Notes under the pieces: model-generated | What the model was told of the DNA's origin: nothing | The model's input: the letters and a program-made list of their open reading frames with translations, nothing else | The model's database searches: none | Part shown: piece by piece, positions 29,654 through 64,000 of the stretch | Numbering within the stretch: position 1 is the first letter of the stretch | How the letters are laid out: the number at the start of each line of letters is the position of its first letter | Made by a program: the position numbers and the translations under genes | NCBI RefSeq assembly: GCF_036588685.1 | Contig: NC_086385.1 | Location: 24,513,216 to 24,577,215 of the forward strand | Source of the DNA: Mytilus trossulus | Lineage: Eukaryota | Length of the DNA stretch: 64,000 nucleotides | Direction: 5' to 3'

Positions 29654-29808
29654 ATGGAGAAAATCTACAGTATACTTTTCATAATGGCATGCACTGTCAC
29701 CGTCAATGGATGCCCTACCTTGTGTAGATGCTTGGAGACGCTTGTTCGTTGCGACTCCAGATCTCTTAAGACAGTTCCATCAAATATACCCAGCTCAACA
29801 ACTTTATT
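29654..29808 (+). CDS. LRR gene, first coding exon: signal peptide + LRRNT cap
   Basis: Acceptor tttcag at 29641-29646, ATG at 29654 in context atcATGg. Translation: MEKIYSILFIMACTVTVNG-CPTLCRCLETLVRCDSRSLKTVPSNIPSSTTL(L), with a hydrophobic N-terminus and the CPxxCxC..VxC..L..VP..IP LRRNT motif. Donor gtaagt at 29809, phase 2. Confidence 0.92.
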
Positions 29809-31278
29809 GTAAGTATTTATTTTTAAAAGTGTTTCTTTAACTAAAAACAACATACGATACGTATTTTAGTGCTGATGAACAATCTTTATTTCGATGTCCA
29901 CAACAAAAGTCTTTTCAATTAGATATTGTTGTAAATACACTATGTTGCTACAATCTAGAATACGCGTTGCAGTATAACTGAAGGATGTATTTTCCCTCAC
30001 TTGGTAATTATTAGTAACATTTTGGACATTTTAATGTCAATATTTGAAGTATTAACGTTAACAATAAAAAGAAAGAAAGAAAAGGACGACTGTATTTTGA
30101 CGCTTTGTACGTGGCAATCTTGTCGTGAAAAAAAATGTTCACGTGCAAACAAAATTTCAGGAAAATGAAAAAGGTTTAACGAAAAGTAGAAGCTAAAAAA
30201 ATAAAGAAAATACTTTTTTCAAAATTATAATAATTTTTTTAGTAGCGTCAAAACTAACCAAATGAGAGTGTATGCAGTTATTTTGATCTTTTTCGAAACA
30301 ACATTATACATATTATGATGTTAACGTATTTGTACTTGTTCATATGCATTTAATTGTTTTAAAAATAGTCTGTAATATTTGAATACTTACACCATATCAA
30401 ATAAAAGTTGCTTTATTACGTAATGAATAAATTATCAATCAAAGACCAAAAGAGAATTAAAAATCACTCGACTCAAAAATTATCCTGAACGACACCTTAA
30501 CGTAAGATTTAAAAGGCTTCTGACCCACTTAAAGTTCTTTTATATTCTGTTTGTAAGTCTTCTAGTCGAAATTAACAAATAAAGAAGTTATCATGAACAT
30601 TTGTTATACCTGTGATACATTCAGTTTGCTTGACAAAGTCGAGAACTCGATGTTTCTTCTTCCTATCGTTTTAAATTTTGTAAGAATTCAATGATATATC
30701 ATTAATAGGTTGGTTCAAATATTCACTTTCTTTTACTAGATTCAATTTAGAGCTTAGAATATTGTTTAGTCACATTTTAATCCTTCAAGATAATACGTTT
30801 CCAATATATGTCTTTTTGTTTTATGTCTCATTGTCTCATTTTCAATTATTGTGTCTCATTAATTATTTAATCGCCAAACAGTCTAATTATTTACATGCAA
30901 ATCACAAAAATATTCAATAAATTATCGACCTTACTAACCACAAAGCATGATTAACCATAATTACAGGCAGTATTCATTATTTATCAGTTTTGTCCATTTG
31001 TCCCTTTTGAAATATGTTATTCATGCTTTCAATCGTTCTTTTTTTTGTGCATACATTTCAAATGATATTGACATGATTGAAAAGGGAATCAATTTTTGAT
31101 GTTAGTGGATTTTTCTAAATTTTAGAGCAGGCCTTGATATTGTTCTCATTTTTCTTTAATCAATTACGCTATAAATGTATAATTACTATTTATCATATAA
31201 ATTAACCAGTGTTCAATCATCTCTGCCTCAATTCCAGTAGCCTCATTTCTATTCCATACTGTGTGTATCGCTAAATTA

Positions 31279-31300
31279 CAAGGCTTGACTCAAGATACTT
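31279..31300 (+). pseudogene. 3' remnant of an LRR exon
   Basis: caaggcttgactcaagatactt|gcaagt resembles GGTTTGACGGCTCTTCAATACTT|gtaagt. It is followed by the post-exon motif (gccat..tggtttgctgtt) and by intron sequence like 34300-34430. Confidence 0.4.
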
Positions 31301-32479
31301 GCAAGTAAATTGATTTGGCAAAAAAAACAATATTTGCCATCATTTGCTGATGGTTTGCTGTTACATTGAATGTATATTGAGTTAAGGTAATTCTGTAATG
31401 ATTTAACTTATCATTTTAAAAACAGTTCACATTTAAAAAGACAAATTTGTTCTAATAAGTTTTGTACATAAAAATATGTTGATTACTTTTTTTTTTAAAT
31501 TAGGAATTCAAGTTTATATAATTGAAGTGAAAATATAATGTGAGTGATTCGAATTTTGTTTATCGAGATGTTACTGGCAATATATATTACTGGAACAGGA
31601 TTGACTATATTCCTATTGAAATTGAGAACAATATCCCGAAAGAGGAACAATACCCCTAACAGCCGGGTGATATACATATTCGGTTGGTAATTAACATTTT
31701 CAGAACAACCAAACAATTGTGTTTTAAACAAGTTTCATGTGACTCTTTTTAAATTTGTCTTTTTTTTTTTTTTAAACAGGAATCGACTCGATTCCAAGTT
31801 GATATAAAACAAAAATCAATGAATATCGATGCATTACCAAAAAAAAAAAATCAATAATAAACATGTTTTTTATCAATTATAGCTGTAAATGTGCGAGCAA
31901 CTTGTCAAAGTTTTTGGTTAGTAACTGCTGCATGAAGAAGGCAAGCCTATATTTCTTTGCCAAAACACAACGAAACTTTTACGCAAACTATTTTATACTC
32001 ATAAATGTTTTGAAGGACTCCACAGGAACAACTTAGGTAACTGAATTGAAAATTGATGGCTGATATTCTTATTGTTTGCCAACACTTGTAATTGACGCAT
32101 AGTTAGCTGTTGTAAAAATATGTTCAAAAAGATAAATGTGTGTGTATTAAATTTCTTCAACTATAATGGGATAAGTTTTTAGATAGCTTACCCTTACATC
32201 TGTGTCCCATGAACACTTTCTTCATTTTTTTAATTTGTGTTTTGGAGAAATAATGAAAATTTCATAGAGATTGGTAAAAACTGGGACTATTATACTAATA
32301 TATCGTATAATAGTCCCAGGTAAGATTTAAAAATTAATTGAATTTTCCCACCGACCCACTTGCTTAAAACAGGTGGATGATCATCTACACATAAAATTGA
32401 TGTGGCCATACTGGAACTTTTTGAAAACACAGAATGAAAAACATAATTGAAAAATATGAAATATAATATTTTCGACGCT

Positions 32480-34195: not shown

Positions 34196-34267
34196 GTATT
34201 TGTTTGATAATTCAATTACCCAGATAGATGCAAACGCCTTTGACGGATTATCGGCACTTACACGTTT
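34196..34267 (+). CDS. LRR gene, intact 72-nt LRR exon
   Basis: ttttcag|...|gtaagt, phase 2-2. Translation (L)YLFDNSITQIDANAFDGLSALTR(L) fits the 24-aa typical LRR consensus. Confidence 0.93.
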
Positions 34268-34496: not shown

Positions 34497-37290
34497 TCGT
34501 CACATCAAGGATTTATTAACCACATTGCGACGCACGTGTTTGAAACAAACTGTTGAATTTTTATCCTTTATCTTTGATATAGATAATTGATTTGAGAGGG
34601 TAATTTAAAGGTCATGTGTTTCAAGCATAGTTTTACGTCTCGCCTTTTTCATTTACGATGGTCCAAAAAAGAAAACTTCAACAGGTTTGGAACAACCTTC
34701 TCCTTAAATGAGGGATCAATTGCAAGTGATAAAAAATGTTGTTTTGTTGTAAAAACCACTTTTAGTACAAAAGGGCACATATTTATATTATTTGAAGAAA
34801 CTTTTCCCAAAGAACTATTCATCTATCTGGTATTAATATATGGTCAAAACATGTCCAATAATTTTGTAATATTCCTGGACCCCTCCTTTAGAAAAGTTGT
34901 TCCAAATAAAATGAATTATTCCCCTTTTAAGATAAGTTTAAGATATTAATCATAGACAACAATGGGAAGGAAAATTGTAAACGAAAAATGTATTAATGGT
35001 ACTTGGCGAAAACACAATTATAGTGGCGAAATATAGATGGTTTTGGCGAAAGAGGTGGCGAAAACAATAATTGACCCATGGGATACCCTATGCGACTGAC
35101 TTTCAAAGCTTTATCAGAATAAATCTGCATGTAATAAGAAATCCGAAAAACAGCTGTTTTATTTAACCATATGATACAATCATGAAAGTGCATATAAAGA
35201 CTCATGTCGGTGATTGCAATCGATTGAACAAGAGTGTATGACTTTTAAATCAGCTGCTGATAGTATTTTGACAGTTACTTTTACTTATTACCATTCCAAG
35301 AAATAGCTTACAATAGTTTGAAATAACACCTTGAAGTTTAATATCAAAATAAGATGTGGTATGATCACCAATAACACAACTATCCACAGACCAAAACCGA
35401 GATATGTAAACATTTACGCCTATGAAAAACTGGAAAACCTAAAATTACCTCCACACAACCCCCTTTCAACCCTAACATTTCCAAAAATGGACATTGCGTG
35501 ATGATGATGATATGTTCAATGGTAACAACTAAATTTTTATTGTGTATGAAACACGACATTAAGTTTGCAGTTAAAGTAAAATCAAGATTGATTTTGATAA
35601 TTTCCATTAAATTATAATTACGTAAACAAAACATGAATAGCTAAACTGTTTTGTGTATTGATAATGCATATTTATTGTCAACATTGATGTAATTTCAACC
35701 ATTTTCAAGTTGCCTACTATTCTCAACGTTTATCTGTTTGAATTGATTAATATGAAAATTAAAATAAGTAAAATAATTGTACTGCATATATATATATATT
35801 AATTTAGAAAATGTTATTTGTGAGTGAGAATTAAATAACTAAACAGATCTACATATTCTTTTAAGTTTGGCGGTTCTTAAAAAATCTGATTTCAAAAAAC
35901 AAATATGCCGTCAGGTGTTGCTGATGTTCTGTCCCATTAAATCATTCGTCTCCTTTTATTTATTATTTCAAGTAAAATAAGTTTTGCCAACTCATCCGCC
36001 TTTTCACCAAATGTGCCCTTCCGAATTAGACTCGTCGCAGGGTGTTCTTACATGAGCAACACGACGGATGCCTTATGAAGAGGAGGACCTGAAGTCACCC
36101 TGTTTTTTTCCTTTTCTTTTCTTTTTTCTTTTTTTTTAGAAGTGGGATCAGGGGTCGGGGGTCTGCGGCGGTGTTCGTATTGCTCAGTCTTTATTTTTGT
36201 ATGTTGTTGTTTGTGTTTTGGTCTATTTGAAAATGTGGCCTGGCGTTGTAAATTTGATTTTAGAGCAATGCAGAGGTTTTCTTTTATCTTAAAATGACAA
36301 GATTGTAATCTTGAGAAGAGATAGACAAATTATGCCTAAATTGAGACCAATACAAAAGAAGATGATGACAATGAGACAACTATCCACCAGAAACATTATA
36401 ACGTAGAAGTTAGCATCGTTAGGTCAGCATATGACCATTAACAATGACCAAAACCGACATCGAGTAGCAAGACATAAAAGGCCATGAAATGAAAATGTAC
36501 AATAGTTGGTAAAAAAAAACAGTAATGCAAAATACCATCACTGCTTTAATGATTTTTTGGGGTTCATTTGAAAAAAAAATCTTAATGGATTTGAAAAAAA
36601 TTGACCGATTGTCTTTGCATTTTTTGCATTCAAACTAGCCTAAACATATTGCCATTTTATTTTGACATGATTAAATATGGGAATCACTCTTTGTTGTCAG
36701 AAGATCCCACATAAAGTCTACAAACCCAAGTTTCGCGATAGCTGTTGTGAAATATGGCCAATAAGATAATTATTTAAGTTCATATATGCATAAGTACTAT
36801 TTATTGTATCATAAACTTCTTTGAGTATGTATGCAATGTATTAACAATTTTCTAGCATCTCTACATCTTTCCAGTTGACTTATATTTTGACTTCAAGATG
36901 TTTGTATTTCTGAATAAGGAAAATAATAGGAGAAATAAATTTCCAAAAATGTTATTTTTCAGGAACCTTGACAACAATCGAATTTCCACATTGAATGGCA
37001 ATCTATTTCGGGAATTAACGGCTCTTAAAGACTTGTAAGTAAACAGATATATCAAATAAAGATTTGTCGCCATATATTGTTGGTTTGCTGTTTTAGTATA
37101 TCACAAATATCTGTTTATACATTTGTTCGGGTAAAATAAGATTTAATGATTGTAATTTGTAACGGCATTTGTTTTCTTCTTTTGAAACCATTTCACAGCA
37201 AAAATATAATATCATTACATTCGATATTACCTTAATGGTTTACCATTTATAAGATACCAGAACGTTTAGATATATTTGTTAATGAATTGA
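34497..37290 (+). repeat. Segmental duplication, copy 1 (intron + LRR exon cassette)
   Basis: Nearly identical to 42599-43877 plus 46794-48440. Paired spurious ORFs occur at 35380..35634 and 43578..43832. Confidence 0.95.
36963..37034 (+). CDS. LRR gene, intact 72-nt LRR exon
   Basis: ttttcag|...|gtaagt, phase 2-2. Translation (L)NLDNNRISTLNGNLFRELTALKD(L). Confidence 0.93.
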
Positions 37291-37629: not shown

Positions 37630-37692
37630 GTTCCTGTACAACGATCAAATTAAAAAAGAAAATCTTTCGTTGTTTCACGGTTCCACAATTTT
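37630..37692 (+). pseudogene. Degenerate LRR pseudo-exon
   Basis: ttttgaag|G TTC CTG TAC AAC GAT CAA ATT (FLYNDQI), then a deleted or frameshifted NLFRxxTxL-like remainder. No GT donor. Conserved flanking intron motifs are present. Confidence 0.55.
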
Positions 37693-38090
37693 ATAAAACT
37701 AATGTTGCCTCGTGTGTTGCTAGCTTGCTGTCGCAATGATTTAGTTTTTTGTTCTACTGGACAACTTTTCTTTGAAAAGTTTCTACTAAGATTTATCAAT
37801 TTGGGTGAATTTAGTTTGGTATTACATGTAAAGTGTGCAATTATCAATAAGTCAAAAAATCAAGACGTTGCAATCTATTTTATTGATTTCTTAAAATAAT
37901 TTTAGGTAATACGTGTGTGTCAATGGTTAGGTTATCCTGTATCAGCTATCTAATAAGGATAAGATATTAAAGTAGTGCAGATCTTCTTAAAATATAGATC
38001 ACATCTTGCTTTGAGGAATAGCATTATCGATCTCAGGCTACATATTTGCACTTTTTTTCTATTACTACTACATATTTCCATTACAATAAA

Positions 38091-38113
38091 GGTTTGACGG
38101 CTCTAACAACATT
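38091..38113 (+). pseudogene. 3' remnant of an LRR exon (GLTALTTL)
   Basis: ggtttgacggctctaacaacatt is nearly identical to 54358-54380 and is followed by the post-exon motif tgtgttgctggtttacttttgcaatgat. Confidence 0.65.
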
Positions 38114-39656
38114 GATAGAATCTGTTTCTACAAAGTGATAATTGTCTTCCTGTGTTGCTGGTTTACTTTTGCAATGATTTTAATGTTCTTTTTGAATTAC
38201 AGTTGCAATTTTCTTCAAAACATCTATTAATTTGTGTTAATTTAATTTGGTATTACATATAAAGTGTACAGTTAAAAATTGCAAATATGGACATTCATTT
38301 TTTTTTATTGGAGTGCTAATATAACTTAGAGGGGTTTGGATTTTGCCAGTTGAGAGGTTGCTTTTTTTAGGACAAGCTAGTTTACATAATCAGGGATGAA
38401 GTTATTCTTTAGAGGTTGTTTCTTTTAGGACAAGCTAGTTTATATAATGAGGGATGAAGAAATTCTTAACAAATACGGAATATCATTATCGGTTTGGTGC
38501 TATTCATTTGTGTATTTTATCAGTATTACATATTTTCAGACAAAAAAAACTTTGGACTTTAGACTACTTCAAATTGAATTTCTTGTATGCTGTTCCAAAA
38601 TAGAAAATGAAGATCAATGAAGGAATTGAATATCTATAGTTATGTATAATTTTCTTTTTGCACTATTTCTAAAAATATGTAAATTTTGTTTTGATTTAAT
38701 TTGTTACTGTTTTCACGAAATAATCATTAAGACAGTTTATAGTTATGTTATTTGCTTGATAAGACAGTTAAGGTCAGCTGAATTCCTTCATTCTTGTAAT
38801 ATGACATATCGTAGTGTAATGGACTAGATTCTATGTAAACATATATGAACAAATCGATATATTACAATACAGTTCTGATTGTGATCAAGTTCTGAAATTG
38901 ATATAAAACTAAAATGAAAATTGTTCATTCAATCCTCGAAAACAGTATCCCATTTGGTAAAGTTGTCGTTACTTAGTCCTGAATAAGGAAGGCAGAAAAT
39001 TATCAGAACAATATCACGATTACTAAATCCTTCTTTAAAACCCAATTTGAAGGAAATCTGTATACAAAATATATTATAAGCGTAAAGGAATTTAAAAGAT
39101 TTATGAGGATAATTTAGGAAACTGAACTGAAAATGTTGTGTCAGCATCCTATCGCGGTTATGTCTACGTGTAAACAACTACGACCTAGGTGATGCCATCG
39201 TTGATGTTTAGACTCTAATTACATGTTGTGCCAGGATCCTATACAGGCTGTTGTCTGCATGAACTCCAACTACTACCTAGGTTATGCCATCGCTGATGGC
39301 TACGACCCTAATTAAAGTAGGGTAAACATTTTACACGTCCAAAGTCCGTACTTTAACTCTGATCATTTAGACATTTGTGTGTATTCAAATTGATCATATT
39401 AAAATTGTCGGTGAATAACCTTGATTTTTTAAGATTTAAGACTAGACATTGAAAATATGGTTGTGTTTCATGATAATAATGTTAGCCATATATGGATAAG
39501 ATAGATATCTTTGTTATATTATAAAAATCTGTCAGTATGTATGTACCAATCAACATGATATACAACACTTCCTTTTGCCCATTATTAACAACCTAGTCGG
39601 TTTGCATTGATGAATATGCAGGATGTAATGCAGAAATACGTTACATTATTTTGTAT

Positions 39657-40394
39657 GTACCTACATACCAAACAGATAACAAAAGTTCCCATATGTTCCT
39701 AGTTTACTGTACCTACAGACCAAACAGATAACAAAAGTCCCCATATGTTCCTAGTTTACTGTACCTACAGACCAAACAGATAACAAAAGTCCCCATATGT
39801 TCCCAGTTTACTGTGCCTACAGACCAAACAGATAACAAAAGTCCCCATATGTTCCTAGTTTACTGTACCTACAGACCAAACAGATAACAAAAGTCCCCAT
39901 ATGTTCCTAGTTTACTGTACCTACAGACCAAACAGATAACAAAAGTCCCCATATGTTCCCAGTTTACTGTACCTACAGACCAAACAGATAACAAAAGTCC
40001 CCATATGTTCCTAGTTTACTGTACCTACAGACCAAACAGATAACAAAAGTTCCCATATGTTCCTAGTTTACTGTACCTATAGACCAAACAGATAACAAAA
40101 GTCCCCATATGTTCCTAGTTTACTGTACCTACAGACCAAACAGATAACAAAAGTCCCCATATGTTCCTAGTTTACTGTACCTACAGACCAAACAGATAAC
40201 AAAAGTCCCCATATGTTCCTAGTTTACTGTACCTACAAACAAAACAGATAACAAAAGTCCCCATGTGTTCCTAGTTTACTGTACCTACAGACCAAACAGA
40301 TAACAAAAGTCCCCATATGTTCCTAGTTTACTGTACCCACAGACCAAACAGATAACAAAAGTCCCAATATGTTCCTAGTTTACTGTACTTACAG
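39657..40394 (+). repeat. 52-bp minisatellite, 14 units, derived from a deleted LRR exon
   Basis: Unit gtacctacagaccaaacagataacaaaagtccccatatgttcctagtttact starts at 39657, 39709, 39761 and so on. A single-copy homolog lies at 62365-62415. Confidence 0.93.
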
Positions 40395-42164: not shown

Positions 42165-43249
42165 CAGGGTTTCCGCTGGTGGTCGCCATTTTTGCATTTT
42201 GCGAAAAAAATAATAATTGTAGCGATATCCATTCACCATTTGCGAAAGAATTTGGCGAAAGAAATTTATATGGTCACATCCTATTATTTCGTACGTCATA
42301 TACATTCGTATTATGCATGCTTTTTCAATGGAAGTTATGACGACTCAATGCATTCTTAATAGCACGAAAACCCATGACTCGAGGATATATAACTATTTAA
42401 TTTCATCCATCTTGTTTATTTATTATTTTTTGGGTTTCTCGAACTTTACCTGATCAGACAATACTCGGAATCCACATTGAACTCGTTACAATTTTGACAG
42501 AAAATCCAAAATCAGCTGATTGCTTTTTATAGGACTAATAAATAAAGGTTTTGATTGTTTGTATGACAAAATGGTATGGTTAAATGGCGTCCATCAGACG
42601 TCACATCAAGGATTTATTAACCATATTGCGACGTCAGTGTTTGAAACAAACTGTTGAATTTTTATCCTTTATCTTTGATATAGATAATTGATTTGAGAGG
42701 GTACTTTAAAAGGCATGTGTTTCAAGCATAATTTTACGTCTCGCCTTTTTCATTTACGATGGTCAAAAAAAGAAAACTGTCGTTATGAAGAAATATATTC
42801 AACAGGTTTTGAACAACCTTCTCCTTAAATGAGGGATCAATTGCAAGTGATAAAAAATGTTGTTTTGTTGTAAAAACCACTTTTAGTACAAAAGGGCACA
42901 TATTTATATTATTTGAAGAAACTTTTCCCAAAGAACTATTCATCTATCTGGTATTAATATATGGTCAAAACATGTCCAAGAATTTTGTAATATTCCTGGA
43001 CCCCTCCTTTAGAAAAGTTGTTCCAAATAAAAGGAATTATTCCCCTTTTAAGATAAGTTTAAGATAATAATCATAGACAACAATGGGGCAAAACAGATTT
43101 TTTTTTGGGGGGAGGGGGTAGAAAGAAGGAAAATTGTAAACGAAAAATGTATTAATGGTACTTGGCGAAAACACAATTATAGTGGCGAAAAATATATGGT
43201 TTTGGCGAAAGAGATGGCGAAAACAATAATTGACCCAGGGGATACCCTG
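42165..43249. mobile_element. Non-autonomous hAT-like DNA transposon
   Basis: TIR cagggtttccgctgg / ccaggggataccctg. Perfect 8-bp TSD gttacagg at 42157-42164 and 43250-43257. Subterminal ggcgaaa repeats are present. Confidence 0.88.
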
Positions 43250-52394: not shown

Positions 52395-53795
52395 AATTGA
52401 AATTCCAATGGGGACTGACTGTGCACCACTTTTTGCGGACCTGTTTTTGAATTGTTATGAGTTACAATTGATGACTAAAATCAGCAAAGACCCTTCGAAA
52501 CAACATTTGATACAAAACATTAACAATACTTTTGGATATTTGGATGATATATTGGCTCTCAATAATGACGACTTGAGTATGTATACTAAAAAATGTAATC
52601 CTGTTGAACTTACTTTAAATAAGGCTAATACTAGCAATGACCACTGCCCTTTCCTCGATCTTGATATCTATATCATTAAAGGGAAGCTTAGTACAAAACA
52701 AATTATGATAAAATAGATGATTTTTCATTTCCTATCGTTAATTATCCATTTTAGATGGTGACGTTTCCTTGTCACCATCTTATGGTGTTTATATATGTCA
52801 ACTTGTACGATTCGCTCGTGTATGTAACAACGTATTAGATTTAAGCGAGAGAAATTTATGTATTACTGAAAAATTATTACACCAGGGTTTTCGATATCAC
52901 AAACTACTCAAAACATTTACAAAATTTTAGATAATTCGTAAATATAACTCAACATGCAGACATCTTATACGTGCAGGTATTTCACATCCAATATTGTATG
53001 GTAATATTCTTTATACAGCACAAACATGTCAGTATTCACCTCAAAAGCTAACAAAACCTTTAAACAGACTTATTAAGAAGGGATATAGTTACGATACTGT
53101 TGTCAGGTCATTAAAGATTGCATATTTTGACTTTAATATTGATTCACTTATAGGGTCTTTGCATCGGAATTAAACACATTTATTCCAAAAACTAGTTGTT
53201 GGCATGATACTGGTTATGTTTCTCATATATTTCATGATGGTATAATACTAAACCCCTAACAGGAGGGATTGTGACTGATATTCATATTATGAAGACATAA
53301 TCTTTCAATCAGTTTAGGTCTGGAGCTGGCATGGGTGTAACTGCTAGTAGTCTGTTGTTATGTATGTATTATTGTATTTTTTTTTATTTTTTTTAATATT
53401 CTGACATCAGACTCGGACTTCTCTTAAACTGAGTTTTACTGTGCGTAGTAGTGCGTTTGTTTTTTCTACATTGGCTAGAGGTATAGAGGAAGGGTTGATA
53501 TCTCGAAAACATGTTTAACCCCGCCGCAATTTTGCGCCTGTCCCAAGTTAAGAGCCTCTTGCCTTTGTTAGTCTTGTATGATTTTTAATTTTAGTTTCTT
53601 TTGTATAATTCGTAGTTTAGTATGACGTTTCATTATCGCTGAACTAGTATACATATTTGTTTAGGGGCCAAGTGGAGGCCTCCGGGTGTGGAAGTTTCTC
53701 GCTACATAGAAGACCAATTGGTGGCCTTCGGCTGTTGTTTGCTCTATAGTCGGGTTGTTATCGCTTTAACACATTCTCCATTTCCTTTCTCAATT
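52395..53795 (+). mobile_element. Decayed Penelope-like retroelement (RT fragment plus downstream repeat)
   Basis: IPMGTDCAPLFADLFL, YLDDILALN, CPFLDLDI, then frameshifted DDFSFPIVNYPF and SPSYGVY.CQLVRFARVC. It interrupts an intron module that is continuous at ~59420-59640. Confidence 0.85.
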
Positions 53796-54308
53796 ATATC
53801 AGTTTTATAAAATTTATCACGAAGAGGTTATCCTTCATCTTTCAAAACATTGTACTCTGCTATAAGTTTTGTATTCAATTTCGACATTTTGTTATGTTGT
53901 AAAACTCTCCGAAGACCTGATTTTTTTTCAGATTTGATAACAGATCTTGACCATGCTATTTTTTAGAATATCTAATTTAAGTCCGACTAGAATATTGGTA
54001 CAATGTATCTATTGTATTATAGACATCTCTCAGTATGTGTACAATAGTACAACCAGTTTGCTTACAGATATGCTACACTTCCATTGGTCTTCTTTTCCCA
54101 AGGTAAATATGTTTGCATTGATGAATATGCGCAAATTTATGCATTAATATGTACTATTTTCAAGAATTCAATGATAAGGAATTTAAGTAAAATGATATTG
54201 GATAAATAAGATGGCTAAACTTAAAATGAAATGTTCTCAGTGATGATGTTACCCTGTATCTGCTAAATGTTACCCTGTATCTGCTAAAGACAAGATATTT
54301 CACGGAAG

Positions 54309-54380
54309 AAGATATGAAAACAATCGAATCACAACACTTGAAGTAAATCTCTTTCGAGGTTTGACGGCTCTCACAACATT
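54309..54380 (+). pseudogene. Full-length open 72-nt LRR cassette lacking a GT donor
   Basis: Translation RYENNRITTLEVNLFRGLTALTT(L). It is followed by ataaga instead of gtaag, and the acceptor context is weak (cacggaag). Confidence 0.8.
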
Positions 54381-54649
54381 ATAAGAGATTTGATTCTGAA
54401 AAAAAAATGCCTTTCTAAATTGCTGATTTCCTCCTTCAATGATTACATTTATTTGTACAACAATAAAATTACAAAACAATTCTTTCGAGATTTGACGGAT
54501 ACATGATTCTGCAAAAATAAATTTCCTTGATGTGTTGCTACAGATCGGTGCCGTCCTAACCTTGACAAAAGTTAACATGGAGCAGACTTGTTGACTGCTT
54601 TCTAAGTTAACTTTTTAAGCAGTCAAGCAAGTTAATTTCGTCGTTTTTG

Positions 54650-54940
54650 GACCAGACCTACGGTCTGCTTTTTTAGGGCTGCTGCAGACCTATCGACAGG
54701 TCTGCTCTAGACCAGACCTTTGGACAAGTCTGCTTTTAACCAGTCCTGAGGACAGGTCTGCCCCAGACCAGACCTGTAGACAGGTCTGCTTATGACCAGT
54801 CCTGAGCACAGGTCTGCCTCAGACCAGACCTATGGACAGGTCTGCTCCTGACCAGACCTGAGGACAGGTCTGCTTTTGACCAGACATGTGGACAAGTCTC
54901 CTATTGACCAGACCTGAGGACAGGTTTGCTTATGACAGAT
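54650..54940. repeat. Subterminal ~30-bp palindromic repeats (accagacctg..gacaggtctgc)
   Basis: About 9 copies lie inside the left end of the TIR element. An aagttaac cluster lies at the right end (58540-58860). Confidence 0.8.
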
Positions 54941-55829
54941 TATCGTTATAAGAGTTTTCTTATCAGACTTGAGCCTTAATTAAAATATTTAAACAACATT
55001 CGCATTGTTTTTCCACAGATATCATTTATTATTTACTCGCTAGACTCTACTAGATATTATACAAATTCTCTCTTTTATTTGATATACATGTATTCTTAAA
55101 CGAATAAAAAATGGCTATACAATCACATAGAGATTTTTTTTTTTTTTATTAGAAGGTGGATAGAAAGGTTATCCAACGCATCGGAACAATATTCTTATAT
55201 CACGGGATATCGACAACATTGTCTACGATGCTTCGTTCCCCGTTTCTTACCTGTCCCTTCCTAAATTTTCCTTTATGCATTAATTTATACATGCATGGTT
55301 ATTTCATTGTTATTCAACTTGTTTGCATTGGATTTACTATTCTATTTCACGCAGAATATTCTGACAGAAATTATACATTGTCCGTAAGCATACGGTGTTG
55401 TAATTAAAACTATCAACAATCTCGTCAAATTCGTCAGATTTATCGAGAGATTTGTCTTTGCCGATATATGGGACGTCCCAAAATTATACTCTATGCGCAC
55501 TTTAATGAAATAGTTGCCACTTGACGTTTAACTATAAACAAAATCAATCAACTGACATAAGAGAGAAGAGAACCTCGTATACATACTTTTTTTTATTAAA
55601 TCAGTGTAAATAGAACTCAGACATGTCAGTGTTGGTACTTTGATGATGTAGCATAATAGTTTTGTTTTACACACCAACATGAACTACTATACATTGTATA
55701 TGTAGTGACTGTTATTTTGAATAAAGAGATGAAATGCTGACACTCTCAATTTATGCGGATTTTTTTTTGCATTTATATAGTTTTCCAATATTATTGATTA
55801 CATGTACATTTATGGTCCTAGTAAAAACT

Positions 55830-58137
55830 CCGGATATTAAAAACATTGCTGATTAACTATGCAGGTATATAGATTTACAATTTAAAGTTCACATATTTTG
55901 TTCACACCGCCAGTTTTGGTTGATGCGGTCAAACAATTTTGTTGTTGTAAAGTCAGCATGAGGTATCAAAACTACTGACATTTTGTTACATATCAACATT
56001 TGAGTAAAAGGAGGACATGCTGTTATCCTAAATTTATGCGAACAAAAATGTGTTCTTATTATATTGCAATATTGCTGTCGATTGTAATTATACAATATAT
56101 CCCAACATTAAAAATTTGGCTGATTAACGATGCAGGTATATAGATTTACAAATTAAAGTTCACAGATGGTCAGTTTTGGTCAATGCGGTCAAATAATGGT
56201 GTTGTACAAGTAAGCTTTAGGTATGAAAACTACTGAAATTTTGTGACGTATCAGTATTTTGGGTAAAAAGAGGATATGCTGGCACACTAAATTAATGCGA
56301 ACAAAAATTTGTTCTTATTATATTGGAATATTGCTGTTCATTGTATTAGACATTGAATCCTGACATAAAAAATATGGCTGATTTACTATGCGGGTATATA
56401 GATTTACAAATTAAAGTGCACATATGGTCGGTTTTGGTCAATGCGGTCAAAAATATTTGATGTACAAGTCAGCATGAGGTATCAAAACTACTGAAATTTC
56501 GTTACGTATCAGTATTTTAAGTAAAAAGAGGACATGATGGCACCCTAAATTTATGCAAACAAAAAATTGTTCTTATAATATTGCAATATTGCTGTCCATT
56601 GTATTATACATTGAGTCCTGACATAAAAATATGGCTGATTTACTATCATGACTATGCATTATGCTATGCGGGTATATAGATTTACAAATTAAAGTGCACA
56701 TATGGTCAGTTTTGGTCAATGCGGTCAAATAAATTTGTTGTACAAGTAAGCTTGAAGTATGAAAACTACTGAAATTTTGTTACGTATCAGTATTTTGAGT
56801 TAAAAGAGGACATGCTGGCACCTTAAATTCATGCAAACAAAAATTTGTTCTTATTATATTGGAATATTGCTGTTCATTGAATTATACATTGAATTCTGAC
56901 ATAAAAAATATGGCTGATTTACTATGCGTGTATATAGATTTACAAATTAAAGTGCCTATATGGTCAGTTTTGGTCAATGCGGTCAAATAATTTTGATTTA
57001 CAAGTCAGCATGAGGTATCAAAACTACTGAAATTTTGTTACGTATCAGTATTTTGGGTAAAACGAGGACATGCTGGCACCCTAAATTTATGCAAACAAAA
57101 ATTTGTTCTTATTATATTGCAATATTGCTGTCCATTGTATTATACATTGAATCCTGAAATAAAAAAATATGGCTGATTTACTCTGCGGGTATATAGATTT
57201 AGAAATTAAAGTGCACATATTGTCAGTTTTGGTCAATGCTGTCAAATAATTTTGTTGTACGAGTCAGCATGAGGTATCAAAACTACTGAAATTTTGTTAC
57301 ATATCAGTATTATGAGTAAAAAGAGGACATGCTGGCACCCTGAATTCATGTAAACAAAAATTTGTTCTTATTATATTGGGATATTGCTGTCCATTGTATT
57401 ATAAATTGAATCCTGACATAAAAAATATGGCTGATTTGCTATGCGGGTATATAGATTTACAATTTAAAGTTCACATATGGTCATTTTTGTCAATGCGGTC
57501 AAATAATTTTGTTATACAAGTCAGCTTGAGGTATGAAAACTACTGAAGTTTTGTTACGTATCAATATTTTGAATAAAAAGAGGACTTGCTGGTATCCTAA
57601 ATTTATGGGAACAACAATTTGTTCTTATTATATTGTTATATTGCTGTCCATTGTATTATACATAGAAAACTGGCATAAAAAATATGGCTGATTTATTAAA
57701 GATGTATAAATTAAAGTGCACATATGGTCAGTTTTGGTCAATGCGGTCAAATAATTTTGTTGTACAAGTCAGCATGAGGTATGAAAACTACTGAAATTTT
57801 GTTACGTATCAGTATTGTGAGTAAAAATAGGACATGCATGCTGGCACTCTAAATTTATGTGAATAAAAATTTGTTCTTATTATATTGGACTATTGTTGTC
57901 CATTGTATTATACTTTGAATCCTGACTTAAAAAAAATATGGCTGATTTACTATGCGGGTACTATATAGATTTACAATTTAAAGTTCACATATGGTCAGTT
58001 TTGGTTGATGCGGTCAAATAATTTTGATGTACAAATCAGCTTGAGGTATCAAAACTACTGAAATTTTGTTACGTATCAATGTTTTGAAGAAAAGCCGGAC
58101 ATGCTGACACCCGAAATTTATGCAAACAAAAATTTGT
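55830..58137 (+). repeat. ~259-bp tandem repeat, ~9 units, internal to the TIR element
   Basis: gtatatagattt recurs near 55864, 56135, 56393, 56671, 56930, 57188 and 57446. Confidence 0.93.
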
Positions 58138-59302
58138 AGTCATGTGTTTAAATGAATTAAACTATTGCAGATTGTGACTGCATAGTTCAAGGATGTATTT
58201 CTAACAAGAACGTATACAACTAACATCAAATATACTTCTTTCCAAAGATATACATAATAAAGTGCAAATATGGATGAATTTGATAGGTAATGGAATATAT
58301 ATATTCAGTGCTTGTTATCATTGTAACCAAGATCGTTTTTATAATTGATAGATAGTCAGATCACAGATACATTTGTGTTACAAGCAACGTTTCATGCGTA
58401 CTTAATTTTCAAATAATTCATTTTGTATTTAATACTGTTTATAAAACGGAAGTATTCATTTTACTTTATTTTCGATGTTTACACTACGAAACAAAGATAT
58501 TAAAAATATTTTTAAAAAATCGTATAGAGCGGTCCTGGTTACAAGTTAACTTAGTGTTGAGCAGACCAGTCAAAGTTAATTTGGGAACAGGTCTGGTTTT
58601 GATCGGATTTTTTAAACAAAAGTTAACTTTGTGGCAGGACTGGTTTCGAAGTTAACTTTTGACAGTACTGGTTCGAAGTTAACTTATATCATTAGCGGAC
58701 CTGTTTGCAAGTTAACCTTTTGGCAGACATAAAAACAGTCCTAGGACCAAGTCCGCTTTTCAAGTTTACTAGATTTTGGTCCTAGGGCTGGCCAGAGCAG
58801 TCATAAGTTCTGTCACAGGTGAACTTTGACCAGTCCAAATGACTGGTTATCAAGTTAAGTTGTTGTACAGGTTAGGACTGCACCCATCTGTAATTTGCTT
58901 TCGCAATGATTTATTATTTCGTCTTAAAAACTCTTTGATATTTTCCTAATTATTTTTATAAATGTACGTCATTTTAATCTGGCATTACATGTAAAGTGTA
59001 CAATTTTCCAGAAATCGAAAATAAGAACGTTCAGATCAATATTAATGGCTGATGTGTATGAGCTTTTGAATGTGCCGTTTGATAAGGGACTTTCCGTTTT
59101 GAATTTTCCTAGGAGTTTGCTATTTTTGCTATTTTTGCTATCTTACTATTTATATTTATGTTAATAAATTGATTAGACTGCTTAATGTCATCTGAATTCG
59201 GACTTCCGTGTATTTTGCGCTATCTTAAGGTAATCAACTGGATCTCATGTTTTAAACATGTATCAACTAATATTCATATATTACGATTAAATTCTGCTTG
59301 TG

Positions 59303-59374
59303 GTACCTACACATCAATTGTATTACAACGCTGGACATAAATATATGTAAAGGTTTGACGGCTCTTACAAAACT
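59303..59374 (+). pseudogene. Full-length open 72-nt LRR cassette lacking an AG acceptor
   Basis: Translation YLHINCITTLDINICKGLTALTK(L). Donor gtgggt is present, but the acceptor position reads tg (cttgtg|g). Confidence 0.8.
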
Positions 59375-59939
59375 GTGGGTGACTTGATTCATTTAAAAAA
59401 AAAGGTAAAACAAGTTTTTTTGAAAGCAATATTTATAGTTAGTGTTTTTGTTATTTGTTTGCAATTTTCCTAAAGATGGTTAAATATCGTTTTAATTTAT
59501 TTACTATAGCGTTTAAAATATACCAGGTTCAATTGCAAGAAATAAGAAAAGGTCATTTAAAATTGATGTAATTGAATAGATAAGAGAGCTAAAGGTCATA
59601 TTATTATTGTCAATGAAGAGGTTACCCTGCATCTTTTAGAAAATACATACTATTGTATTGTGTGTTCAAATTCGTTATTTGGTTCATCAGTAAAAAAGTC
59701 TAAAGACCAGATTTTTTAGATGTTATAGCAGACCTAGAACATACTATGTTTAACATTAATCATTAAAGTCAGACGTAAGTCATGCTATTCATTTTAGTAA
59801 AAAAAACATTTGTCAGTATGTATGCAATATGTTACCAAGTTTTCAAACAGATATATTACACTTCAAGAGTAAATAAGTTTCCGTTGATGATTATGACATA
59901 ATTTATACAGAAATACGTTTCAAAAATATTATTTTGCAG

Positions 59940-59979
59940 GTACCTGAATAACAATCGAGTTACGACACTGGACATAAAT
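59940..59979 (+). pseudogene. 5' half of an LRR exon with intact acceptor
   Basis: ttttgcag|G TAC CTG AAT AAC AAT CGA GTT ACG ACA CTG GAC ATA AAT (YLNNNRVTTLDIN), after which similarity ends. Confidence 0.8.
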
Positions 59980-61000
59980 CATAAAACATGCATTTTGTTA
60001 AATCAAAAAACTGTGATTGAGAAGAGATGACATAATTTTTATTGAAATTGAAGGCAATTCTTGCAAAAAGCAGTCATCATAATCAATCTGGTGCTATAAA
60101 TAAGTACATCTTTTATTAGAAATCCACATTATCGGAACAGTAAAATCTTTACAATTTGGACTACTAAAATTTGACTTTCTTTTTTTTGTCCCAAAACTAA
60201 CTAATTGTTGAAGGTTGTATGGTTGCCTCTAAAGACAAGAGTAGTATACCGTTGTTCGAAATTCATAAATCGATTGAGGAAAAAACAAATCCAGGTTACT
60301 AACTAAAACTATATATATAACAATGTCCATTTTCCTGACTTGGTACAGGACATTTTAAGAAAAAATGGTGGGTTGAACCTGGTTTTGTGGCTAGCCAACC
60401 CTCTCGCTTTTACGGCCATGTTCAATATAACATTAAAATGACAATACCACATGACAGGACTACAATACAATTACATGGGAGAACATACAGGACAGAGAAA
60501 CACACAAACAATAGCTATCAGGTTTATAATTTAATACGCCGTTTCGTATACATAAGACTCATCAGTGATGCTCCGATGAAAAAAGTTCGAAAGCCAAAAC
60601 AAGTAAAAAGCCGAAGAGCACTGAGGACCAAAAGTACCACAAAGTTGTGCCAAATACTGCTAAGGTTATCTGCCTGGGATAAGAAAATCCTTAGTATTTA
60701 GAATAATTTATGCAATATGATGTCATACTTTTGCAAACAGTAAATTTATATAAAAAAAGACTATATAATAGATATACATGTTTAACACCGAAGTGGTGAC
60801 TAACTACAGAAAAAAAACGAATACGTAAAACAATCAGCAAATAAAAAAGGCACAGCCGAACATCGTATTATATGTTAGCCGAAGAGATCAACGCACAAAA
60901 GTGACGTCACATTTTCCAAAAAAAATGGATAGAGTTCAAGATTAAATTTGTAATACTGATATTGCATGTATTAATAACAATGAAAATTACAATACATATT

Positions 61001-61280
61001 ATTATCGCTATTTTGTGCCTTTTTCCTTTGGTCTTTTTTTGTGATAATTTTCATATCATGCTTCTCGCTAGATATGTAAAAATTATCACTAGAAACTAAG
61101 GAGACCACGTGGCGTTGCTAACGAAATTGACATTGAAATTGACAACGTCGTCATAGGTAAAACAGCGATAAACAGATTATCATTGGTCATCTCAACTCGA
61201 TTGCTTTTCTCACTTTCGCTGTTCCAGCTCAAGCGAGAAAAATCAATCTCGTTGAGATAATCAACGATAATCTATAAATA
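61001..61280. mobile_element. Short insertion ending in a long imperfect hairpin
   Basis: agattatcattggtcatctcaactcgattgcttttctc pairs with gagaaaaatcaatctcgttgagataatcaacgataatct. It is absent from the related repeat copy near 19150. Confidence 0.6.
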
Positions 61281-62364
61281 TAAAATAGTGGTAGTACTTA
61301 GATTATTTGTATTATCTAGCCGTGTCGGTATTTCTTCTGAATCAAACTGTAAACCAAATACATCCTTTAAATTTAATTGACCCAAACTAAAATCTTATAA
61401 TTGAACTGGGTGTTTAATAGAACATAAAAAAATAATAAGATTAACTACTACAAACGAGAAGACATTCGACAAAATCCGATGAGAATAACAAGTATAACAT
61501 CAAAACTAAATACATGAATTTTGGATAGAAACATACCGTGACACGTCTTATAGAAAGCTTACATCCACTTCATTTGAACTTTCGTGGATAGTTGTCTCAT
61601 TGGCATACCACACCTCCTTTTTTGCACATTATATGACCTTATCATTTGATACAGCCATCTGAATTATGAGTTTCTTCTAGTATGTCCTATTTCAGAGTCA
61701 TTAACAAGATATAATTCAAGACAGAATGTGTAGAAAGAAATATCAATCTATAATTCTGATTCTGATCAAGCGCAACAGTTATATTTGTTCCATTGTACAT
61801 TTGTAGCTTTAACATGGTACACACATTTTCTAAGTTGCGTTTATTTTATCCTGCATATGAAAGGCATACCATATTTATACCAATATTACTTTGTTAACAA
61901 CAATACTAAGGAAACCATTGAGCAAATTGTGACATAAGAGTCAAAGAAAGTATAGCTGCTAGCTATGGACCTGATTAAATGAGGTTATAAATTTAACACG
62001 TGATACGACCTTTCTGAAAGTCTTTCATCACCCTTGTATTGACCTATCTATTTTAAAATATGGTCCATTTGATATTTGTTTTTGCTAGCTTATCATAAAT
62101 GACACGGTCAAACAGTGTGAATACAAAATTGATTTTCATAGACTTTACAGCAAACCTTAAAGATGTCTTCGTCTTGTGTTAATTATTTGAGCCATTGATG
62201 AATAATAACTATTTATTATATTATGTAATCTTTCAGTACGAATACAATATACTAACCAGTGTTTAAAAAGATATACTGCACTTCCGTTGATCTATTAATG
62301 TATTTTTGTTTACATTGATGATGATGCTAGTTGCAATGCAGAAATGCGTTATGTTATTTTGAAG

Positions 62365-62389
62365 TTACCTACAGATCAATCAAATTAAA
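62365..62389 (+). pseudogene. 5' remnant of an LRR exon (YLQINQIK) fused to the post-exon intron motif
   Basis: ttttgaag|T TAC CTA CAG ATC AAT CAA ATT AAA, then ttccccatatgttgctgatttgct. Confidence 0.65.
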
Positions 62390-64000
62390 TTCCCCATATG
62401 TTGCTGATTTGCTATTCCATTATATCACCCTCTCCTTTATGTTTTTTCTTTAAATGTGAAACACCATTTTTTTTTGTAAAAGCATAAAGTCAGTATTTCA
62501 TCATTTCGAGAACTATTACCAATTTTCCCAAAGATGATTAAATATTGTTTTAAATTATTTGGCATAACTTCTAACGTGTATCATTGCATGGTTTTGTCTT
62601 ACTGTTATTGACGTCTTTACGTATATCCATAGGGTGGTGAATGTGTACTGATTGATTTTTAGTATTCGATTCATGATTTTTATTAGTAGTTATTGGCTTT
62701 GTACTAGCATTCAGTAACTGCGAGGTACTTTCATATCTGTACTGTGTGTCTTTTGTGTTTATTTGAAATACTTATGTGTGCTTTGTATCGATCATATGAG
62801 TTAAGCCCATATAAACTGAGTGTTATAGTTTGCTGTTATAGTGTCCTGCTAACCAGCTTTGGCGCAAGCAGACATGTTTAAACATGTTTAACCACTCCAT
62901 ATTCTGTTTCTGTATGTTCCAAGGCAGGAGCCTGTAATTCAGTGGTTGTTGATGTTTATCATTTTTGTTTTTCGTTTATTGTTTTGTTCACAAACAAGTT
63001 CGTTAGTTTACTCTTTTGAATTGTTTTTCATTCGTCATATTGGGGACTTTTATAACTTACTATACAGTATGGTTTTTGCTCATTGTAGAAGGCTGTATTG
63101 TGAGTATAGTTATTAACTTCCACATCATTTGATATCGAAAGGAGAGTTGTATCATTTGCAAGCATACCAAAAAAAAAAGTAGGTCGTTTAAATTAATGCA
63201 ATTGCATATATTAGTCAACTTAAGCTCATCTAAATATTGTCAATGGGGTAGTTGCCCTGTATCTGTATTATTGTTTACGAAACAATAGTTAGCTGGACCA
63301 GAAATGACAATTTTTTCATATAATTTAGACTCTTTCTAAAAAGGAGTGCACTTATCAATCCGGTTATCAACGTCTACGAAGAGCAATTCAGTTTTTCAGA
63401 CTAGCATAAACGCTGTACTTTGTTTTCAGTTGACTGTTTTATATTTTGCCCAAACACTAGAATAGATTTGTACGAAGAATTTAATGTCTAAAATTATTTC
63501 TAGTTTATCCTGGTGTATGTTTATTAATAAAATATATACGCAAAAGTTTTACAGTAGTGAATAATTTCGTTTTAATTTGAGTTGGTACCATTTGTAAGAC
63601 GTAAATAGTAAGAACAATAAGATGTGGTGAATTGATTTGATTATATAACTTAGGTGATATGAATTTGATCGATGTAGAGATTCTCTTATTTTTTTTAAAG
63701 ACAAGATAGTTAACTGGAGCAAAGATGACAAAAATGTCCTGATAAAATTGAGACTTATTCAAAAATTGGAACTTTAAGATCACCATACGGCCTTCAAAAA
63801 TTAGCAAAACCCATATCACATAACAAGCTATGAAAGGCCCCGACAATACGAACGTAAAACAATTCAAACGAGAGAACTAAGGCCTTTAAACAGAAAACGA
63901 AAAACAAGTATGATATATGTATATAGCAATAAATGACAACCTTTGAATAATGTTCTAACATTGGACTAAAAGGATTAAATTCTTGTCTAAGTCGTTAACA

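Follow-up and report, generated by a model that had tools for sequence, protein, structure and literature searches.

A stretch of 64,000 nucleotides of Mytilus trossulus DNA (the window) carries 72-nt exons that each encode a single leucine-rich repeat (LRR), interspersed with damaged copies of the same cassette. The question raised by such a locus is whether it is a hidden library from which receptors may be diversified, a possibility raised by an earlier note on this DNA, or one gene in whose introns duplicated exons have decayed.

Anatomy of the gene and its family

The N-terminal exons were confirmed to be as first described. Coding exon 1 (29654..29808, + strand) starts with the ATG at 29654, specifies a signal peptide, an LRRNT cap and a first half-repeat, and ends in intron phase 2 with gtaagt directly after 29808. 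Its product, a hydrophobic leader followed by a CPxxCxC...VxC cap, scored 29.4 bits against the Pfam LRRNT family PF01462 (cut-off 25.8), and was 56-83% identical to the N-termini of the Mytilus family proteins P0007, P0014 and P0058. The AG at ~29646, just before exon 1, suggests a separate 5'UTR exon further upstream. Three intact LRR exons follow on the + strand, namely exon 2 (E2, 34196..34267; exon-profile E 5e-14), exon 3 (E3, 36963..37034; exon-profile E 4e-19) and exon 4 (E4, 48108..48179), a duplicate of E3; each is exactly 72 nt long, with AG/GT flanks, an open +1 frame (intron phase 2) and one LxxLxLxxNxI repeat.

The 3' end of the gene, rightly placed outside the window by the same note, was located past the window end. 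Two further intact LRR exons, E5 (L012:7359-7430) and E6 (L014:3308-3379), are succeeded there by a putative LRRCT exon (L014:9386-9540), a Ser/Thr stalk exon (L016:3065-3130) and a last exon encoding a transmembrane segment plus tail (L016:4278-4885). The candidate LRRCT exon was recognised by an NPxxCxxC...C...C pattern and a 44-51% alignment to the cap region of P0007 and P0058, Pfam LRRCT giving no match to it at E <= 0.01. The last exon begins, as judged by inspection, with a ~24-residue hydrophobic stretch followed by GKKY, and 187 of its positions align to the transmembrane-plus-tail region of P0058; after the single transmembrane helix comes a tail of ~175 residues with Tyr motifs. A Pfam search with the 201 residues of this exon returned no family at E <= 0.01. 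A Toll-like receptor was rejected on the grounds that no TIR domain was found in those residues, and of the exons sought downstream the putative LRRCT (by its Cys pattern) and transmembrane exons were present and a TIR was not. An LGR-type LRR G-protein-coupled receptor (GPCR) was likewise rejected, the sole hydrophobic segment being followed by a hydrophilic tail up to the stop codon, with no 7TM region.

Overall, nine coding exons separated by introns of 2.7-33 kb extend over 89 kb and comprise 1344 nt in frame, equivalent to 448 codons. All nine have open frames bounded by canonical AG/GT sites, no junction creates a stop codon, and the five intact LRR exons each encode one 24-residue LxxLxLxxNxI/L repeat. 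As read from the DNA, the gene would be a complete type I LRR membrane receptor and not an incomplete germline gene; the invertebrate LRR receptor with symmetric 72-nt exons that had been proposed was borne out as a Mytilus gene with one LRR per exon. The notion of a hidden cassette library was not upheld, the germline gene having all its parts and canonical splice sites.

One spliced E1-E2-LRR RNA contig was recovered from run X24, its splice point coinciding with the 3' end of E2, joined to the next LRR. The contig differs from this allele at the 5' end of E2, the sequence of its next exon has no match in this assembly when up to 2 mismatches are allowed, and the contig stems from a close relative or a divergent allele, not from this allele. 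No annotated product of the locus was found; P0086, encoded on the same chromosome, is a different paralogue. With neither an RNA match to this allele nor an annotated product, the gene could be unexpressed; we infer both the expression of this allele and the joint use of all five LRR exons.

At least 30 E1-like and at least 13 LRRCT-like places are present in the genome, and the annotated Mytilus proteins P0058, P0057 and P0023 have the same architecture as this gene. LRR_8 matches in Mytilus family proteins, which were searched in place of the joined model, had E values of 1e-19 to 1e-29. The best non-Mytilus protein matches were 25-37% identical, no one-to-one orthologue was found outside Mytilus, and the gene appears to belong to a Mytilus-specific multigene family. 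Some Mytilus relatives have been automatically named 'vasorin-like', 'LGR4-like' or 'peroxidasin homolog', names that reflect generic LRR similarity only.

Cassette relics and nested duplications

An exon-only DNA profile, run against both strands of 164 kb, matched only on the + strand inside the gene, bar one match at E 2.7; a second profile comprising exon plus flanks was used to test the listed relics. All relics lie on the + strand, from window 31.3 kb to ~36 kb past the window end, and dead cassette copies outnumber live ones by ~5 to 1. What can be read from their sequence is that splice dinucleotides are missing, stop codons and frameshifts have appeared and cassettes are truncated; to call the array mostly 'silenced' is an interpretation. 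Seven of the approximately ten dead or partial cassettes listed in the earlier note were supported (E 2e-5 to 4e-36), and three, at 39657, 52205 and 62365, were weak.

Two of the supported relics are full-length and stop-free. That at 54309..54380 (exon-profile E 8e-12; exon-plus-flank match 54264-54501, E 4e-36) has its donor GT changed to AT, and its downstream copy has acquired a frameshift through a 1-nt deletion; that at 59303..59374 (exon-plus-flank match 59266-59495, E 3e-31) has its acceptor AG changed to TG, a change common to its downstream copy and to the copy in a collinear paralogue on contig C10, the latter also containing a stop. The cassette at 37630..37701 (within the match 37590-37754, E 1e-9) has kept its acceptor, lost its donor and gained an in-frame stop near its 3' end, and that at 49516..49587 (match 49476-49579, E 2e-5) still has an AG acceptor but no donor, and its frame contains stops. 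At 59940..60011 (exon-profile E 0.002; exon-plus-flank match 59899-59980, E 3e-12) the acceptor and 5' half are intact, with unrelated sequence as the 3' half and no GT at +72. Two remnants are shorter: at 31295..31371 (exon-plus-flank E 2e-10) the 3' end of a cassette, its donor now GC, is followed by the downstream intron motif, and at 38088..38194 (E 3e-12) the intron motif follows the final ~25 nt of a cassette. The exon-plus-flank profile also detected relics absent from the first list, at 46981-47106, at 50918-50971, and at 35789..35989 (E 2e-14), the last being a heavily decayed cassette-plus-flank with copies at 46981-47106 and beyond the window.

The weak relics at 52205..52267 (exon-plus-flank E 0.055), at 62351..62434 (the 5' end of a cassette joined to the intron motif; E 0.011-0.11) and at 39657, the basis for which is 76% blastn similarity to 62308-62402 plus the upstream intron motif only, are one deletion derivative in which the first ~25 nt of a cassette are fused to intron sequence. 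A minisatellite of 14 units of 52 bp (39656..40394, + strand) recurs in both the downstream duplicate and the C10 paralogue. Its unit looks like the 5' end of a cassette joined to intron; a cassette origin is plausible and statistically unsecured. Remnants of acceptor tracts and donors, and of the intron motifs downstream of them, are still recognisable in the relics, which therefore originated as copies of an exon together with its intron.

The corresponding duplications were apparent as nested exon-plus-intron blocks of 92-95% identity, all on the + strand. Block A (34498..37288), which holds E3, matches block B (42599..48431), which holds E4, at 93-94%, with a third copy beyond the window; block B is interrupted at 43877-46792 by a 2.9-kb retroelement. 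An intact reverse transcriptase (RT) ORF is found inside one duplicate. E3 is the oldest of the E3/E4/E5 triplet. A large block (38720..59750), containing E4 and the relics at 49516, 54309, 59303 and 59940, is repeated 31-35 kb downstream at window-equivalent 69791-89425, past the window end, with 92-95% identity. The C10 paralogue is 87-96% identical, introns included, and the relics at 37630, 38088, 49516, 59303 and 59940 are dead at its corresponding sites; the cassette at window-equivalent 65654, dead here, is intact in C10, and the C10 counterpart of the live E2 has a TG acceptor. Cassette birth-and-death, one of the modes of diversification first suggested, is supported by these ~94% nested duplications and by the different survivors in the gene described here (C13) and in the C10 paralogue, and the dead cassettes are probably remnants of nested exon-plus-intron block duplications.

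Substitution pattern and competing explanations

Comparison of E3, E4, E5 and C10_90468 revealed that all 12 variable columns were nonsynonymous. E4 differs from E3 at 9 of 72 bases, every one nonsynonymous, with flanks that differ by 5.1%; for E3 against the other copies, exon divergence was 12.5-15% as compared with 5.1% in the flanks (p 0.002-0.015). Exon 1 gave a pN/pS of ~2.1, the putative LRRCT exon 0.5 and the tail, against the C10 paralogue, 0.4. The substitution tests are based on few sites (12 LRR-exon columns, and 14 nonsynonymous plus 2 synonymous changes in exon 1). The tail exon is 97.8% identical between the two genes amid intron at 88-89%, a figure that does not distinguish which copy is constrained. 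Micro-conversion between cassettes could imitate an excess of exon divergence. The rapid turnover earlier ascribed to the receptor was supported, for its recognition end, by these values, and a fast-changing recognition end with a conserved tail would fit a receptor with a ligand-binding face under diversifying pressure, for which we infer an immune or recognition role. Conversion from pseudo-cassettes, also previously suggested, found no such backing: the base set distinguishing E3 from E4/E5 was carried by no relic, so that no conversion donor was seen.

The structure of the gene, its duplications, the decay (in part shared with C10, in part differing from it) and the pattern of substitutions are matters of observation. 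The explanation favoured for them, and considered distinctly probable, is that the window contains the 5' half of one complete, recognition-type receptor gene of the Mytilus family, which grew by block duplication and in which most copies have decayed. Its predicted product would consist of a signal peptide, LRRNT, five 24-residue LRRs, LRRCT, a short Ser/Thr stalk, a transmembrane helix and a ~175-residue tail with conserved Tyr motifs. The gene would have been enlarged by successive unequal crossovers, in which exon-plus-intron blocks of anything from a single unit to ~33 kb were duplicated; most duplicated exons would since have been truncated, been deprived of a splice site or acquired a stop, so as now to drift as intron, and two minisatellites may have been seeded by exon fragments. 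In the surviving exons and exon 1, amino-acid changes outpace change in the flanks, with the tail being conserved.

Combinatorial splicing, also suggested in the earlier note, was not supported. There is a small but real chance that transcripts differ in which of the frame-neutral exons (E3/E4/E5 in particular) they include, in which event one gene would yield receptors with 2-5 LRRs and differing binding faces. The five LRR exons are all 72 nt and run from phase 2 to phase 2, so that any subset keeps the frame, the differences among E3, E4 and E5 are confined to amino-acid-changing sites, and a relic beyond the window (L013:5532-5603) remains 72 nt long, AG..GT-flanked and open. Family isoforms P0023 and P0041 differ by one duplicated 22-residue stalk exon, and other annotated family isoforms differ in their C-termini. 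However, the sole RNA junction seen, in a relative's contig from one run, was a plain E2-to-next-LRR join, and the annotated relative P0014 uses near-identical repeats consecutively, not alternatively.

That the whole locus is instead a dying, unexpressed paralogue, the open frame of which has by chance still not been hit, is unlikely. Decay throughout the introns, and the failure to find either a transcript of this allele or an annotated product, would accord with such a fate, but the 1344 nt of open frame in nine exons, each with canonical AG/GT sites, do not, and the tail exon is better conserved than the introns relative to C10, at a pN/pS of 0.4, although either copy may be the constrained one.

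Still less likely, the window 38.7-59.8 kb and its copy at window-equivalent 69.8-89.4 kb could be alleles placed in tandem by the assembly. The two align collinearly at 92-95% identity, heterozygosity is high in Mytilus genomes, and contig-level read data cannot give copy number. Against this stand their 4-5% divergence and private kb-scale insertions (an intact retroelement and a 258-bp satellite); moreover, the smaller A/B duplication inside the window and the equally diverged C10 copies mean that duplication in the family is real regardless, and even such an artefact would remove no more than E5 and part of the relics beyond the window.

Finally, a system like that of the variable lymphocyte receptors (VLRs), in which dead or partial cassettes serve as a donor library through somatic copy-choice or germline patch conversion, would match the partial cassettes around the gene, the order of LRRNT, LRRs, LRRCT and stalk, and the presence of VLRs among the solved proteins nearest in sequence to the family, but is hardly credible in the face of a complete, spliceable germline gene, of intronic relics in a single orientation with splice-site and intron-motif remains, of five relics dead alike in C10 and copies that acquire frameshifts, of E3- or E4-specific base sets found in no relic, and of a similarity to VLRs no greater than that to IGFALS, LRRC15, LRIG1, Slit2 and LGR4.

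Comparison with known systems

When P0058 was compared with solved structures, the best matches (E 1e-23 to 1e-44) were small extracellular LRR proteins, a group comprising IGFALS, LRRC15, LRIG1, Slit2, the LGR4 ectodomain, FLRT3, LRRTM, chondroadherin and the Nogo receptor. The mussel receptor resembles them in its Cys-capped solenoid of 24-residue 'typical' LRRs and its type I membrane topology, and differs in having only about five LRRs and a tail without a known domain (TIR, 7TM, Ig or EGF; Pfam). One 24-residue LRR per symmetric 72-nt exon is likewise the arrangement in SLIT, LRIG and LGR4-6; however, these developmental genes are conserved and do not vary in exon number, whereas the mussel gene and its paralogues differ in their live cassettes.

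Lamprey and hagfish VLRs share with the mussel gene a signal peptide, LRRNT, few LRRs, LRRCT (putative in the mussel), a Thr/Ser stalk and a hydrophobic C-terminal part, together with partial LRR cassettes nearby and variable residues at the x positions of LxxLxLxxN. However, the VLR germline gene has no LRR modules between its caps, whereas that of the mussel is complete, with ordinary introns; VLR donors are free of splice signals, occur in both orientations and are usable, whereas the mussel cassettes are decayed intronic exon copies in one orientation; and in place of a GPI signal the mussel receptor has a transmembrane helix proper, followed by a long tail. Nothing points to donor use of the kind made by a lamprey-style assembly system.

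Tandemly duplicated, frame-neutral exons for a binding surface are also a feature of Dscam-type arrays, as compared with which the mussel gene has only three similar live exons, readable additively. The ciliate system of 90-bp exons resembles the mussel gene in that exons of constant length hold one LRR-type repeat each and are extremely symmetric in phase 2, that whole exon-plus-intron units have multiplied by unequal crossing over, and that in-paralogues differ in exon number; a LINE-like element adjoins the ciliate repeat units, and an intact RT ORF lies inside one mussel duplicate. The ciliate exons are 90 bp, with short uniform introns, and mostly live, whereas those of the mussel are 72 bp, separated by introns of up to tens of kilobases, and mostly dead.

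Anatomy of the predicted receptor gene

Within the 1.30-Gb assembly (~31% GC), in which the window occupies C13:24513216-24577215, the signal peptide/LRRNT exon (E1) recognised in the earlier note was borne out on the + strand at 29654-29808, where an ATG start leads into a hydrophobic leader and then a CPxxCxC...VxC cap, scoring over the Pfam LRRNT cut-off and followed by gtaagt at a phase of two codon bases. The three intact LRR exons proposed at 34196, 36963 and 48108 on the same strand (E2, E3 and E4) proved equally sound, each being exactly 72 nt in length, bounded by AG and GT, open in the frame dictated by E1, and encoding one 24-residue repeat. The 3' end of the gene, correctly placed beyond the window, was sought in contig C13 sequence up to 24,677,215. 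Two further intact 72-nt exons were located there, E5 (L012:7359-7430, L012 to L016 being successive pieces of C13 past the window end) and E6 (L014:3308-3379), together with three exons located via homologues found with E1: a probable LRRCT exon (L014:9386-9540), a 66-nt Ser/Thr stalk exon (L016:3065-3130), and a last exon (L016:4278-4885) coding for a transmembrane stretch, a basic stop-transfer sequence and a hydrophilic tail. Of the downstream domains anticipated, a probable LRRCT exon and a transmembrane exon were consequently present and TIR was not. The tail, which contains the conserved motifs YQxLLP and YTNLYxxI/L, returned no domain in a Pfam search, and membership of the TLR and LGR families was rejected.

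The coding lengths (155 + 5 × 72 + 155 + 66 + 608) sum to 1344 nt, equivalent to 448 codons, and the codons formed at successive junctions are TTG on five occasions, then CTG, GAA and CGT. Because these lengths and joining codons accompany a full set of domains, the gene is predicted to encode a complete type I LRR receptor extending over 89 kb, the reading-frame check comprising exon lengths and junction codons only, with exons searched singly rather than as a joined model.

Beyond the window, at L014:3363-5277 (C13:24610578-24612492), a minisatellite of 48 bp × 40 begins 17 nt into live E6; its unit consists of the E6 3' end plus a GTAAGT donor, thereby placing ~40 tandem donor copies directly after the real donor. 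Reading through the first E6 donor leads to an immediate stop.

An annotated product of the locus was not found when E1 was searched against a library of 1.84 billion proteins, which returned paralogues only, nor with the annotated Mytilus family protein P0014 as query, which returned no Mytilus kin; equivalent queries with P0011 (region 1-200) and with another such protein, P0058, recovered P0058, P0057 and P0086 rather than the locus itself. P0086 is coded for on the same chromosome, yet matches the tail at only 75%, and is therefore a different paralogue.

Duplication, decay and survival of cassettes

Self-comparison revealed two direct duplications, one of 34498-37288 against 42599-48431 (93-94%), the other of 38720-59750 against a block 31-35 kb downstream (92-95%). 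The duplications are nested, the relics (dead or partial cassettes, a cassette being one 72-nt LRR exon) fall into matching sets, and E3, E4 and E5 are copies of a single exon. Two insertions, a 2.9-kb reverse-transcriptase element and a 258-bp satellite, are confined to copy B. The former is an intact non-LTR retroelement ORF on the - strand at 44004-46901 (965 residues; RVT_1, 120.7 bits); the duplicated intron block exists in three copies, of which one alone carries the element, indicating an arrival later than the duplication. The latter (8.6 copies, 85% matches) occupies 55911-58137 within a 4.3-kb insertion that is present in the window copy of the large duplicate and missing from the downstream copy. 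That the downstream duplicate is a haplotype artefact of assembly is considered improbable. Two tandem arrays were also recorded upstream: an 11.4-kb satellite at 5056-16479, 13 kb from the gene, whose periods of 43, 79 and 122 bp are nested (73-78% matches) and whose GC and AT skew is strongly negative, and a young array at 25539-26134 with a 73-bp unit (8.2 copies, 97% matches).

An exon-only DNA profile, applied to both strands of the window plus 100 kb downstream, gave matches on the + strand only and between 34 and 97 kb, save for one match at E 2.7. A wider profile, comprising the exon with flanks of ~45 nt on its upstream and ~130 nt on its downstream side, secured seven of the relics first listed (31.3, 37.6, 38.1, 49.5, 54.3, 59.3 and 59.9 kb; E 2e-5 to 4e-36) and disclosed three absent from that list (35.8, 47.0 and 50.9 kb); those at 39657, 52205 and 62365 were only weakly matched, and represent a single recurring deletion form. 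Neither the 29 kb preceding the gene nor the 60 kb following it gave a cassette match. The locus is unusual in having ~5 live exons against at least 25 relics, and also in two minisatellites plausibly seeded by exon fragments. One copy of relic 54309 carries a 1-nt deletion. A copy of relic 59940 past the window (L013:5532-5603) retains AG and GT at a spacing of exactly 72 nt and is open in frame, but its 3' half is not LRR-like; it is possibly a cryptic exon.

A paralogue at 7.52-7.64 Mb of another contig, C10, aligns collinearly along the entire gene, in introns as well as exons, at 87-96% identity, and all comparisons of the C13 gene with C10 refer to this one paralogue. Five cassettes dead in the C13 gene (37630, 38088, 49516, 59303 and 59940) are also dead at the corresponding places in C10, the AG-to-TG acceptor change of relic 59303 being common to both copies. 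P0058, a family protein from M. edulis, employs as live LRRs sequences that are closest to dead cassettes 54309 and 59303. Since the paralogue's copies are dead at matching places and this kin uses similar LRRs live, the relics appear to be old, inherited and drifting. One cassette is intact in the C10 paralogue and dead in the C13 gene (acceptor AA, in-frame TAG), and the C10 counterpart of live E2 has no acceptor, so that the set of surviving cassettes evidently varies, as judged from these two genes, from one gene to another. The nested duplications, shared relics and different survivors uphold the cassette birth-and-death proposed in the earlier note. By such a process, exon-plus-intron units would be copied, of which few would survive and alter residues of the binding face, the others becoming intron filler or minisatellites.

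The family is represented in the assembly by at least 30 E1-like and at least 13 LRRCT-like places, and the sequence at C10:1.49 Mb encodes one LRR of M. trossulus XP_063402467 without a single difference. At C10:7.52-7.95 Mb, at least three paralogous genes of like architecture, each of at least 100 kb, are clustered; E1 copies occur at 7520819 (+), 7678425 (-) and 7833354 (+), and LRRCT copies occur at 7626624 and 7952528. In the paralogue examined, E1 and the E2 counterpart are 57 kb apart, a distance that includes its own ~29-kb internal duplication.

Substitution pattern, transcripts and potential sources of diversity

Alignment of E3, E4, E5 and the C10 copy shows twelve variable columns, every one of which alters the amino acid; with synonymous sites at ~24%, the chance of recording no synonymous change among the 12 is ~0.04. 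When flanks were kept inside the homologous block, the divergence of E3 from its sister copies was 12.5-15% within the exon and 5.1% over 1.2 kb of flanking sequence (Fisher p 0.002-0.015). Of the eight residue positions that vary, five would correspond, in the standard LRR register, to an x of LxxLxLxxNx, on the concave face. Values of pN/pS between the C13 and C10 genes were about 2.1 for E1 (14 nonsynonymous versus 2 synonymous changes), 0.5 for LRRCT, 0.2 for the stalk and 0.4 for the tail, the exon for which is 97.8% identical compared with 88-89% for its introns. These counts, small and all in one direction, suggest that the ectodomain changes fast and that the tail is constrained.

No run recorded as RNA contained the stretch. 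Contigs from X24, a sequencing run in which 5% of sampled words were present, whose RNA status is a guess and whose species code is that of X1, the DNA source matching the stretch best, were compared with 34150-40149. In one contig, E2 ends exactly at 34267 and is succeeded by the start of an LRR exon differing from E3 at 3 of 30 bases; at a second loose end, an E1-like end is joined to the start of E2. The transcript letters agree with P0058 and not with the C13 allele, the 30-nt sequence of the next exon is absent from the assembly at up to two mismatches, and no E2 among the C10 paralogues matches the transcript. Absence of the 30-mer and of a matching C10 E2 renders the transcript unassignable to the C13 allele; its fit to P0058 argues that a very close relative, or else a divergent allele, employs the splice pattern predicted. 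Over E1, E2 and the next LRR, the transcript is closer to P0058 than to any assembly locus, a mismatch that may point to a paralogue with presence/absence variation or to a highly divergent allele. DNA contigs of three coded organisms span the whole 6 kb, relics included.

Combinatorial splicing of the LRR exons is possible, if unlikely, every one of them being frame-neutral, but the near-identical repeats of the annotated relative P0014 are used in series; family isoforms on record differ by a duplicated stalk exon or C-terminus. It is doubtful that the gene generates diversity across both populations and transcripts: on that account, unequal crossover plus presence/absence alleles would leave individuals with different counts of live E3-like cassettes, and frame-neutral exons deployed in varying subsets would equip each mussel with its own repertoire of short LRR receptors. 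The near-relative in X24 fits such an account, having no exact counterpart in the assembly despite the common species code. Conversion from pseudo-cassettes, also entertained initially, gained no support from a search among 21 cassettes, which revealed no donor, no relic carrying the set of bases that separates E3 from E4/E5 and the best having 6 of the 9. A donor library like that of the variable lymphocyte receptors (VLRs) of lamprey and hagfish was not supported, and VLR membership itself was rejected, the gene being complete, the relics decayed exon-plus-intron copies in one orientation, and a donor lacking.

Relationship to known LRR systems

The gene is a real, complete, fast-evolving and lineage-specific LRR receptor whose history of exon turnover is instructive, and the locus provides a clear, datable example of single-repeat gain and loss in such a receptor. 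Bivalves possess large and variable innate-immune gene sets, and a family of ~90-kb genes so built helps to explain the joint origin of recognition diversity and long introns. For annotators and scanners the locus serves as a caution that LRR-like pseudo-exons arrayed about a gene need not signify VLR-like assembly. Literature searches turned up no account of the Mytilus family or of its pseudo-exons. By sequence, the family belongs with the Cys-capped extracellular LRR proteins. Its nearest solved counterparts are IGFALS, LRRC15, LRIG1, VLRs, Slit2, LGR4, FLRT3 and NgR, among which the VLRs do not stand out, and the best matches outside Mytilus are 25-37% identical. The nearest described genomic analogue of the mussel gene is the LRR gene set of Tetrahymena, in which arrays of 90-bp phase-2 exons have spread by unequal crossing over beside LINE-like elements (PMC6564038).
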